A stretch of DNA of 64,000 nucleotides. It comes from Utricularia gibba. Taxonomy: Eukaryota > Plantae > Magnoliophyta. The position numbers and the translations under genes are program-made. The stretch is taken from the NCBI GenBank assembly GCA_002189035.1, contig NEEC01000012.1, forward strand, positions 434,001 through 498,000, written 5' to 3'. A model generated the notes under the pieces. That model worked only from the letters and a program-made list of their open reading frames with translations. It was not told the DNA's origin and did not search any database. Of the stretch, positions 11,618 to 13,164 are shown in pieces; positions within the stretch are counted from its first letter, which is position 1, and each line of letters opens with the position of its first letter.

Positions 11618-13164
11618 CTAAAAGACCAGTTCGTGGGGCTTCACGCCATCCTTGAGTGAAAACCTTGCACCCAAATAGAACTTCAGGTCGGGAACTGATT
11701 CCACTGCCTTCAGAAGCGGGGTATCGACAGCCTTCTGGTCTTCCTTCCTCTCAGCAGGAAGAGATGCCTTCTCCTGGGAGAAAAGACAAAGACCACCATG
11801 AACAAAATGGACGGAAGAAAGTACTGGGAATACTGAAAGCTAACCTGTTTCTCGCTTCAAAGAACTGATCCTCACTCTTCTTTTTCTTCTTATCAGCCTG
11901 CTTGGCGAAGTACTTGTCATCGAACTTCTCAACATTGACTCCAGATATGTCGACCTTTGTGGATGTCCCTATGACAAAGGACTGGTTGACGCGCCTCAGG
12001 GGAACACCATTGATTTTGAAAGGCCCTGTGTAAATAAAGAACGAAAAGAATGGGAATTGAGTAAAACCCCATTTTACGATGAAGTACAGTGAAAGTAAAA
12101 TGCAAGTGTGAAAAGGCATGTATTTCTCATGGCCAACCCCAAGAGTTAAAAGCGGAAACCCGCTACACAAGGATATAGGATATGAGAACCCATCCTCCGG
12201 ACACATGAAATCATCATAGAATGAATCAATCAAACATTCAACAGAGGAGGTTAATGTAAGATGATATGCAACAGTGGGCTATGCGATGGTCAAATACAAA
12301 TCGCCCCATTTTGTGAATCATCTACAGTATAAGGCATACTACGAAAACTGGCAGAAAAAACATGTTTTTCTCATGGCCAACCCCAAGAGGTAAAAGCAGC
12401 AACCCGCTCCACAAGGATATAGGATATGAGAACCCATCCTCCGGACAAATGAAATCATCATAGAATGAATCAATCAAATATTCTACAGAGGAGGTTTATG
12501 TTAGATGACTTGAGACACTGGGCCATGCGATAGTCACATAAAAAATCGCCCCATTTTGTGAATCATCTACCAAATAGGAATAACAAAAAAGACTATGAGT
12601 AACACGAGATAAGACGGGTCATACGAAAAAAAACATAAACTCCTAGTAGACTGTGAAGCATGAAAAAAGATTATAAAATGTACAAGTATCAGGAATACCA
12701 ACAGATCCAGGCAGCAAAAATGGAAGAATTGCCAACCTGTTACGAGAAGCAATCCAGAAGGAAGCTGCTTCAGGAAAACCACTCGCTTTCCCATAAATCT
12801 GCCAGCTAATAAAATCAGCACGGTCCCAGGAGTGATACTTGCCCTGTAGAGATCCAAATCTCGAATTAAATCATCAATGCGGAATCCGCGAACAGAGGAC
12901 AAGTACGCGAATCGTAAACCTTAGTTTGGTGGGCTTCGGCTTGCGGGTATTTGATAGCGGCTTTTTCACATCATCGGCGGGATAAAACTTCGGGGCTTTC
13001 TCAGGAGCAGGAGCCGCCGCGGGAACCTTTTCATGGTGAGGGAATTTGCCGCCGTTCTTCGCCTTGATAGCCCAGAGTCCACGCTTATGGTAGACGGCAG
13101 ACCGAGAATGCTTCCTAACCCCCCGAATGAGCTCTGGATTTCGCGTCCTCTGTTTCGCCGTCAT
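11618..13164 (-). CDS. RPL6: 60S ribosomal protein L6 (eL6), 4 exons: 13164-12920, 12843-12737, 12025-11845, 11773-11618; apparent 1-nt frameshift at end of exon 3
   Basis: [39 protein letters not shown]; [50 protein letters not shown]; C-terminus [19 protein letters not shown]. Confidence 0.95.
12116..12325 (-). ncRNA. Intronic box H/ACA snoRNA, candidate snR30/U17 homolog, copy A
   Basis: 5' hairpin (AGATGAT...ATCATCT), H box ACATTA (ANANNA), internal hairpin (CCTCC...GGAGG), 3' hairpin (CTCAT...ATGAG) with ATATCCTA at 12183-12176 and GGCCAT at 12134-12129, ACA at 12121-12119; same strand as host RPL6. Confidence 0.8.
12360..12570 (-). ncRNA. Intronic box H/ACA snoRNA, candidate snR30/U17 homolog, copy B
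   Basis: Tandem paralog of copy A: TAGATGATT...AAGTCATCTA stem, H box ACATAA, internal hairpin, ATATCCTA at 12427-12420, GGCCAT at 12378-12373, ACA at 12365-12363. Confidence 0.8.

Follow-up and report, generated by a model that had tools for sequence, protein, structure and literature searches.

Tandem H/ACA snoRNA genes in an RPL6 intron of Utricularia gibba: a probable plant counterpart of snR30/U17

Few small nucleolar RNAs (snoRNAs) are indispensable for the production of 18S rRNA. One of them is the H/ACA snoRNA called snR30 in yeast and U17 in vertebrates, on which early cleavage of the precursor toward 18S depends. Two motifs of its 3′ hairpin, m1 and m2, pair with the sites rm1 (yeast G802-A807, GGAAUA) and rm2 (U836-U841) in expansion segment 6 (ES6) of 18S rRNA (PMC2664660, PMC7601244, PMC12095548), and in cryo-electron microscopy of yeast snR30 the rRNA between these sites folds as a helix, which produces a three-way junction (PMC12095548). 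The motifs are assigned to the 3′ hairpin loop's proximal portion (Fayet-Lebaron et al. 2009, PMC2664660), with the m1/m2 element at an invariant distance of 7 nt upstream of ACA; in pseudouridylation guides, the upper stem closes 14-16 nt from ACA (PMC2664660). The canonical m1 is AUAUUCCUA, with listed variants that differ only at the last base, and the canonical m2, AAACCAU, is invariant in all listed species (PMC7601244, Table 1). Poor conservation marks the 5′ and internal hairpins, which are dispensable (PMC2664660, PMC7601244, PMC12095548), and an internal hairpin is found in both yeast snR30 and human U17 (PMC7601244). Here, we compare this family with two tandem H/ACA units located in an intron of the ribosomal protein gene RPL6 (eL6) of the flowering plant Utricularia gibba, within a 64,000-nt stretch of DNA (contig NEEC01000012.1, positions 434,001 to 498,000; hereafter, the window, in whose numbering all coordinates of the pair are given).

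Described members differ in size and gene organization. Vertebrate U17/SNORA73 (E1) has 203-222 nt and is intron-encoded, and Xenopus U17, which occupies all six introns of a ribosomal-protein gene, is a precedent for such a host. Human U17 has a 7-bp basal stem ending in CAU/AUG, followed by 2 nt and ACA. Yeast snR30 (606 nt) is transcribed from an independent capped gene, and essentiality and the partners Utp23, Kri1, and Krr1 have been shown for yeast snR30 only. In Trypanosoma brucei, m1 and the 18S rm1 site have co-varied (PMC2664660), with m2 unchanged.

In plants, no member of the family is known to have been described. Table 1 of a 2020 review covers animals, fungi, and Tetrahymena and lists no plant RNA (PMC7601244), while a 2021 review states that snR30/U17 could not be identified in Arabidopsis (PMC8351944). 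This absence has led to speculation that plants take a different route at ES6. In the open literature, including that published after the two reviews, we found no report of a plant snR30/U17, and a text search with the motifs gave no relevant match; the first-pass annotation of this stretch, which was made from the sequence alone and named no characterized plant member, agrees with the 2021 review. Plants do have multi-copy intronic snoRNAs, such as AtsnoR79a/b/c and the intronic cluster in At1g31860. In addition, Arabidopsis has orphan H/ACA snoRNAs (snoR110, snoR145, snoR157-159, snoR163, and snoR164) to which no rRNA or small nuclear RNA (snRNA) target has been assigned (PMC2875012).

Two tandem H/ACA units in RPL6 intron 2

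The RPL6 gene lies on the minus strand of the window, with its start codon at 13163, and the translation of its exon 1 is the eL6 N-terminus (83-88% identity to RPL6 of the Lamiales Erythranthe, Sesamum, and Castilleja). Its second intron holds two head-to-tail units of ~212 nt in sense orientation, copy A at 12360-12571 and copy B at 12116-12326. On re-reading, the coordinates and layout proposed earlier, two ~210-nt sense-strand units in this intron, proved correct. Both copies consist of a 5′ hairpin, an ANANNA H box, an extra internal hairpin, a 3′ hairpin with facing motifs, two bases, ACA, and 3 nt, as the first-pass annotation had described. Transcript evidence comes from four runs (X1-X4), whose label "RNA" is a guess and whose contigs carry no strand. 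In the following list of features, scores refer to a covariance model of the 3′ hairpin (R1) and invariance refers to an alignment of six sequences (A4), both of which are described in the next section; P1 is the basal stem of the 3′ hairpin.

12026-12736, minus strand: RPL6 intron 2 (GT..AG), host of both copies; spliced contigs from four runs connect 12024/12025 with 12736/12737.
12359-12571, minus strand: copy A, the upstream copy in RNA sense, ~212 nt; run X2 contig, fold, and R1 score of 99 bits for the 3′ hairpin (copy A is in the training set of the model).
12502-12570, minus strand: copy A 5′ hairpin; helices 1-3 are 94-96% paired, 4 pairs changed on both sides, 33% of columns invariant, pocket sequences variable.
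12496-12501, minus strand: copy A H box, ACAUAA; the same columns read ANANNA in 6/6 sequences.
12434-12494, minus strand: copy A internal hairpin, between H box and 3′ hairpin; of the 9 pairs in helix 4, 6 have changed on both sides.
12368-12432, minus strand: copy A 3′ hairpin; P1 pairs 12426-12432 with 12368-12374 and never varies; 71% of columns invariant.
12419-12427, minus strand: copy A m1-like motif AUAUCCUAU, invariant in 6/6 sequences.
12373-12378, minus strand: copy A m2-like motif GGCCAU, conserved core GCCAU, ending exactly 7 nt before ACA in 6/6 sequences.
12363-12365, minus strand: copy A ACA box, invariant; the X2 contig ends at 12359, 4 nt past ACA.
12116-12326, minus strand: copy B, the downstream copy, ~211 nt; fold, R1 score of 100.5 bits for the 3′ hairpin (copy B is in the training set), and low-depth contigs in X1, X3, and X4.
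12252-12257, minus strand: copy B H box, ACAUUA, from the sequence.
12175-12183, minus strand: copy B m1-like motif AUAUCCUAU, from the sequence pattern.
12129-12134, minus strand: copy B m2-like motif GGCCAU, from the sequence pattern.
12119-12121, minus strand: copy B ACA box, from the sequence.

In each copy, the 5′ hairpin stem is formed by GUAGAUGAUU.../...AUCAUCU and the stem of the internal hairpin by CCUCCUCUG.../...CCGGAGG, while the basal stem of the 3′ hairpin has 7 bp in both (UUCUCAU/AUGAGAA). The motifs AUAUCCUA(U) and GGCCAU stand at the base of the 3′ hairpin loop, and their outer AU/AU make up the top two basal-stem pairs. The pattern ATATCCTA-N40-60-GCCAT-N7-ACA occurs twice in the window, versus 0.01 occurrences expected from shuffles. 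According to RNAalifold, part of m1 can pair with a downstream UUGGG in the free RNA, which corrects the earlier description. The two copies are ~91% identical, with 21 differences over ~224 aligned columns, and have 92% mean column identity across longer aligned stretches.

An RNA of the predicted size and ends is represented in run X2. There, a contig of 234 nt consists of window positions 12359-12571 and, at the RNA 5′ end, an adapter-like tail of 21 nt; it extends from one base before the first stem of copy A to four bases past ACA, as expected of the discrete ~210-nt RNA on which the earlier proposal depended. Its depth is 11, versus 12.8 for the spliced RPL6 contig of the same run, and X2 contains 100% of the sampled words of copy A. 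In X1, X3, and X4, exon depth is 400-2545 and intronic contigs have a depth of 4-7; these contigs are confined to 12089-12599, and the flanking intron outside this interval yielded none in the three runs.

Two further observations concern the same intron. In run X2, a near-identical adapter-like tail (CC/CCCGTATATCGGAGCACTGCA; one leading C shorter) is found both at the snoRNA 5′ end (12571) and at 12026, the last intron base, which adjoins the first base of RPL6 exon 3 (12025). The shared tail suggests a library that captures 5′ ends (template-switch-like) and a species of RNA beginning at the 3′ splice site. At the boundary of intron 2 and exon 3, a match to the yeast C/D snoRNA snR76 (12029-12088, plus strand, antisense to RPL6; 18 bits, E = 0.75, gathering threshold 55) was judged to be due to chance.

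Conservation and covariation in Lamiales

RPL6 loci of relatives were retrieved via their proteins and searched with R1, which had been built from four sequences: both window copies and those of Erythranthe and Salvia. Four other Lamiales species carry full copies, each in intron 2 of this same RPL6 paralogue.

Erythranthe nasuta, locus L001, 2527-2603: ~99 bits (in the training set; a blastn match preceded the model).
Salvia divinorum, locus L005, 1906-1982: ~99 bits (in the training set; a blastn match preceded the model).
Striga hermonthica, locus L131, 1576-1652: 95.7 bits, independent of the model.
Penstemon smallii, locus L183, 1397-1473: 89.9 bits, independent of the model.

These four sequences and the two window copies make up A4 (six sequences, five species). 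Under the proposed fold, 92.7% of the cells of A4 are paired, as opposed to at most 55.5% for slid controls, and 12 base pairs have changed on both sides, a number that was matched by 0 of 500 shuffles. The covariation falls mostly within the 5′ and internal hairpins. Because single-sequence fold energies are ordinary (z about −1.2 for both copies), it is covariation, not energy, that supports the structure. ANANNA and ACA stay in register across the six sequences. Folds, covariation, and register together establish the H/ACA architecture: hairpin, ANANNA, hairpin, and ACA 3 nt from the 3′ end.

Conservation is concentrated in the 3′ hairpin, where 71% of columns are invariant (33% in the 5′ hairpin and 28% in the internal hairpin), and reaches 87-91% for P1 with m1 and P1 with m2. 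Across relatives, the m2 core is GCCAU only, preceded by G, U, or A; the second G of GGCCAU is found only in U. gibba, the relatives carrying U or A. The expectation that the motifs would be kept in orthologous introns thus holds in the four other Lamiales species for m1 and for GCCAU, but not for GGCCAU as a whole.

The units might also be non-functional duplicated intronic sequence or decaying snoRNA pseudogenes; in favor of this, decayed relics exist in the RPL6 introns of Olea and Andrographis (see below), and single-sequence z-scores are unremarkable. We consider this the most improbable of the explanations. Both copies keep all boxes and stems, and P1, both motifs, the H-box A positions, and ACA are untouched by their 21 differences. 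Moreover, compensatory changes have accumulated across species, an RNA-sized contig has exactly the predicted ends, and the copies resemble each other from the first stem to a few bases past ACA, where the similarity fades. The pair is a genuine, conserved, and expressed pair of H/ACA snoRNAs.

Beyond the RPL6 loci, a scan of metagenomes with the pattern ATATCCYA..TTGGG..GCCAT-N7-ACA gave 51 matches, about as many as a rough estimate of chance, of which none had the full basal stem and none scored with R1. A pattern scan of viral contigs gave 17 matches; we read these as chance, as the best model scores were 17.3 bits (E = 0.11) and 14 bits (E = 0.85).

Other features of these loci were noted. 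RPL6 intron 2 of Salvia holds a second, partial copy ~200 nt upstream of the full one (L005, 1565-1630), which comprises only the 5′ hairpin and an H-box-like sequence and probably remains from a tandem duplication of the kind that is intact in the window. Directly downstream of the snoRNA-hosting RPL6 of Salvia, on the opposite strand, lies a gene for Utp14 of the small-subunit processome (L005, 3249-3583), an adjacency that is probably a coincidence. The RPL6 gene of Ipomoea nil (L002, 1501-2274) has 774 bp for 229 codons and is nearly intron-free, versus 1.3-2.2 kb at other RPL6 loci; it may be a retro-copy.

The 3′ hairpin and its predicted 18S rRNA partner

For membership in the family, we used the definition of Atzorn 2004 and Fayet-Lebaron 2009 and made the comparison by published rules. 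The m1-like motif begins within the last two basal-stem pairs on the 5′ strand and GCCAU ends in the first two basal-stem pairs on the 3′ strand, and both positions are as in snR30/U17. The window copies and those of Erythranthe, Salvia, Striga, and Penstemon all keep the spacing of 7 nt between GCCAU and ACA. Relative to the canonical m1, AUAUCCUAU lacks one U or has U5 changed to C, a variant outside Table 1 of PMC7601244.

Similar to vertebrate U17, the plant RNA is an intron-encoded H/ACA RNA of comparable size, has a small internal hairpin before the 3′ hairpin, and carries its motifs at the 3′ hairpin's loop base, with 7 nt between the end of m2 and ACA. It differs from U17 in m1 (AUAUCCUAU rather than AUAUUCCUA) and m2 (NGCCAU rather than AAACCAU), in having no match to Rfam SNORA73, in a 5′ domain that is a single hairpin unrelated in sequence, and in having two copies within one intron. 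With yeast snR30, it shares the logic of the 3′ hairpin and the poor conservation of the 5′ and internal hairpins; it is about three times shorter and intronic, and its motifs are altered in a way that matches plant 18S (GGGAUA, UGGCC). The pair also resembles plant snoRNA clusters in its multi-copy intronic organization.

To obtain the target side, we searched with a plant-type 18S segment, which retrieved at least 120 rDNA contigs that contaminate bacterial and archaeal assemblies (L009-L128); a first search for 18S in viral contigs had given no match. One of these contigs (L009) has a complete eukaryotic small-subunit rRNA, 5.8S rRNA, and most of the large-subunit rRNA according to Rfam. 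The affected assemblies, from the GTDB species set, include isolates, gut metagenome-assembled genomes, and leaf-nodule Burkholderia, evidently contaminated by host, food, or laboratory plants. We counted the copies with enough clean upstream sequence among the matches listed: GCAUGGGAUAAC, the rm1 context, is present in 106 of 106, and GUUGGCCUUCGGG, the rm2 context, in 104 of 106. The plant 18S sequences given in the first-pass annotation were therefore right. In 18S numbering, AUGGGAUA spans 805-812 (GGGAUA, 807-812) and UGGCC spans 841-845 (UGGCCU, 841-846). Between the plant sites are 28 nt, a gap equal to that of yeast (807 to 836), with a conserved 7-bp helix inside it.

The m1′ segment UAUCCUAU can form 8 bp with AUGGGAUA, including one G-U (−7.2 kcal/mol), and GCCA can form 4 bp with UGGC (−4.2 kcal/mol), extended in U. 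gibba to 5 bp between GGCCA and UGGCC 841-845 (−7.5 kcal/mol). For comparison, the yeast helices have −4.4 and −4.3 kcal/mol, the latter for AAACCA/UGGUUU. On plant rm2, the canonical AAACCAU would form just 3 bp (−2.7 kcal/mol). In silico, with 18S from other plants, the two motifs are thus complementary to rm1 and rm2 on either side of a stem-loop, and ES6 is the best bipartite site in the 8-kb rDNA unit, in which looser chance sites are also present. Outside m1 and m2, we found no further snoRNA-18S duplex that is conserved across species. AUCCUAU could instead pair with 18S AUAGGAU within the ES6 helix (7 bp), but that site varies among plants (ACAGGAU in some), whereas AUGGGAUA is invariant, and we therefore prefer the yeast-homologous register.

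At one m2 position, sequence comparison gives a clear case of lineage-wide compensation, A to G opposite the 18S change of U to C (UGGUUU to UGGCCU). In m1, compensation (U to C opposite A to G) is plausible, but the change is not strictly required, because the canonical m1 could still pair. The earlier claim that complementarity requires both motif changes accordingly stands for the A-to-G change of m2; it does not extend to the second G, which is not conserved, or to m1.

The 3′ hairpin also argues against an ordinary rRNA pseudouridylation guide, which we regard as very unlikely. Such a guide would account for the canonical H/ACA layout, and single sequences do give bipartite matches by chance, for example 13 bp at one 25S site in Salvia. 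Yet no rRNA target of the 3′ pocket is common to at least four of the six sequences, nor is any of the 5′ pocket, whose strands are not conserved and where low-stringency matches are common to three close relatives only. In the 3′ hairpin, the upper stem is closed at ~30 nt from ACA, not at the distance that guides need, and the distal loop bases vary. In line with the earlier proposal, neither a guide family in Rfam nor a conserved target of either pocket was detected.

Probable assignment to snR30/U17, proposed mechanism, and significance

Judging by sequence and structure, we consider it probable that the two tandem expressed H/ACA snoRNA genes are the plant (so far Lamiales) counterpart of snR30/U17, and their probable relationship is orthology. 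The interpretation offered in the first-pass annotation is supported, and each of its sequence-level predictions that was tested held.

Several observations weigh against this assignment. Among the RPL6 loci compared, intact copies are restricted to a single paralogue in core Lamiales, and no copy is present at the loci of Solanum, Ipomoea, Theobroma, Trema, Primulina, and Handroanthus; an essential RNA should be present in every plant, and the copies found so far are in Lamiales only. Decayed relics occupy RPL6 intron 2 in an Olea paralogue (L007, 2030-2147) and in Andrographis (L184, 1600-1769), where m1 is gone, the 3′ hairpin lacks its middle, and ACA is altered. The m2-like (G/U/A)GCCAU keeps only CCAU of the otherwise invariant AAACCAU, and its pairing with 18S has only 4 bp in four of the five species. 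The canonical m1 would still form 6 bp with plant rm1, with a wobble (−5.9 kcal/mol). The 18S sequences come from plant contamination of bacterial assemblies and are not those of U. gibba itself, and the discrete RNA is represented by one contig from one run whose "RNA" label is guessed. Finally, cmscan with Rfam 15 gave no match to SNORA73 or snR30, either at the gathering threshold in the window or at E ≤ 10 in 901 nt and in the isolated 79-nt 3′ hairpin. Only chance matches were returned (rli62, snR76, Mu-gpT-DE, and ST7-OT4_3), ordinary guide families were not among them, and Rfam plant snoRNA families gave no match at E ≤ 10 in the 901 nt. Under the SNORA73 and snR30 models as they stand, the pair does not count as a member. 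The yeast and vertebrate RNAs themselves need separate Rfam models.

The relics imply that the intronic position is older than the divergence of these families and that the copy there was later abandoned. If the RNA is essential, functional copies must therefore sit elsewhere in the Olea and Andrographis genomes, which would fit the mobile, multi-copy habit of plant snoRNA genes.

The restriction to Lamiales RPL6 introns, the expected universality of an essential RNA, and the lack of an Rfam match even for the isolated hairpin are also what a lineage-restricted orphan would produce. The serious rival is a Lamiales-restricted orphan H/ACA snoRNA, or a guide for a target other than rRNA (snRNA or mRNA), whose likeness to m1/m2 and ES6 is coincidental. 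The short motifs also match several other loose bipartite sites in the rDNA, and the orphans of Arabidopsis (PMC2875012), compared here by description only, are likewise H/ACA RNAs with no assigned target; the candidate may be one of them under another name. Nevertheless, we consider an orphan unlikely. It would leave to chance the coincidence of independent features: motifs at the loop base, the 7-nt spacing to ACA, yeast-homologous rm1 and rm2 sites, the 28-nt gap, and the internal hairpin. Furthermore, the proximal loop is invariant while the guide-type bases beside the upper stem vary, and complementarity of 8 nt plus 4 nt in a fixed register would arise by chance at about 1e−5 to 1e−4 per hairpin, as roughly estimated from base frequencies.

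If the assignment to snR30/U17 is correct, we propose the following mechanism. The snoRNA, which is transcribed within RPL6 intron 2 and represented for copy A by a ~212-nt species with the predicted ends, would assemble with the H/ACA core proteins CBF5/NAP57, NHP2, NOP10, and GAR1. Splicing or cleavage would release it from the intron, followed by exonucleolytic trimming. On nascent pre-18S rRNA, m1′ UAUCCUAU would dock on AUGGGAUA (about 805-812) and m2′ GCCA (GGCCA in U. gibba) on UGGC(C) (about 841-845), and the 28 nt of rRNA between them would form a helix and a three-way junction, as in yeast snR30. Because both hybrids would sit at the base of the pocket, no uridine would reach the catalytic site. 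The ribonucleoprotein would then serve as a chaperone and assembly platform for ES6 and the 18S platform domain and would be required for early cleavages releasing 18S rRNA, but not for pseudouridylation.

We lean slightly toward a broader conjecture: that this is the long-missing snR30/U17 of flowering plants and that every angiosperm has its 3′ hairpin design (AUAUCCUAU ... GCCAU-N7-ACA), at genomic sites that vary. With its ends, motifs, and predicted 18S contacts defined, the candidate makes the plant question directly testable, and it supplies a search pattern for other plants. T. brucei snR30 is a precedent for a recognition motif and its 18S partner changing together, as proposed here; in the plant candidate, both motifs are off consensus, and the clearest compensation is in m2. 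If the broader conjecture is true, plants would be a lineage in which an essential snoRNA and 18S ES6 changed jointly, and did so in both recognition helices. If the assignment itself holds, T. brucei would be joined by a second natural case, and a clearer one, in which this snoRNA and its docking site on rRNA have co-evolved.

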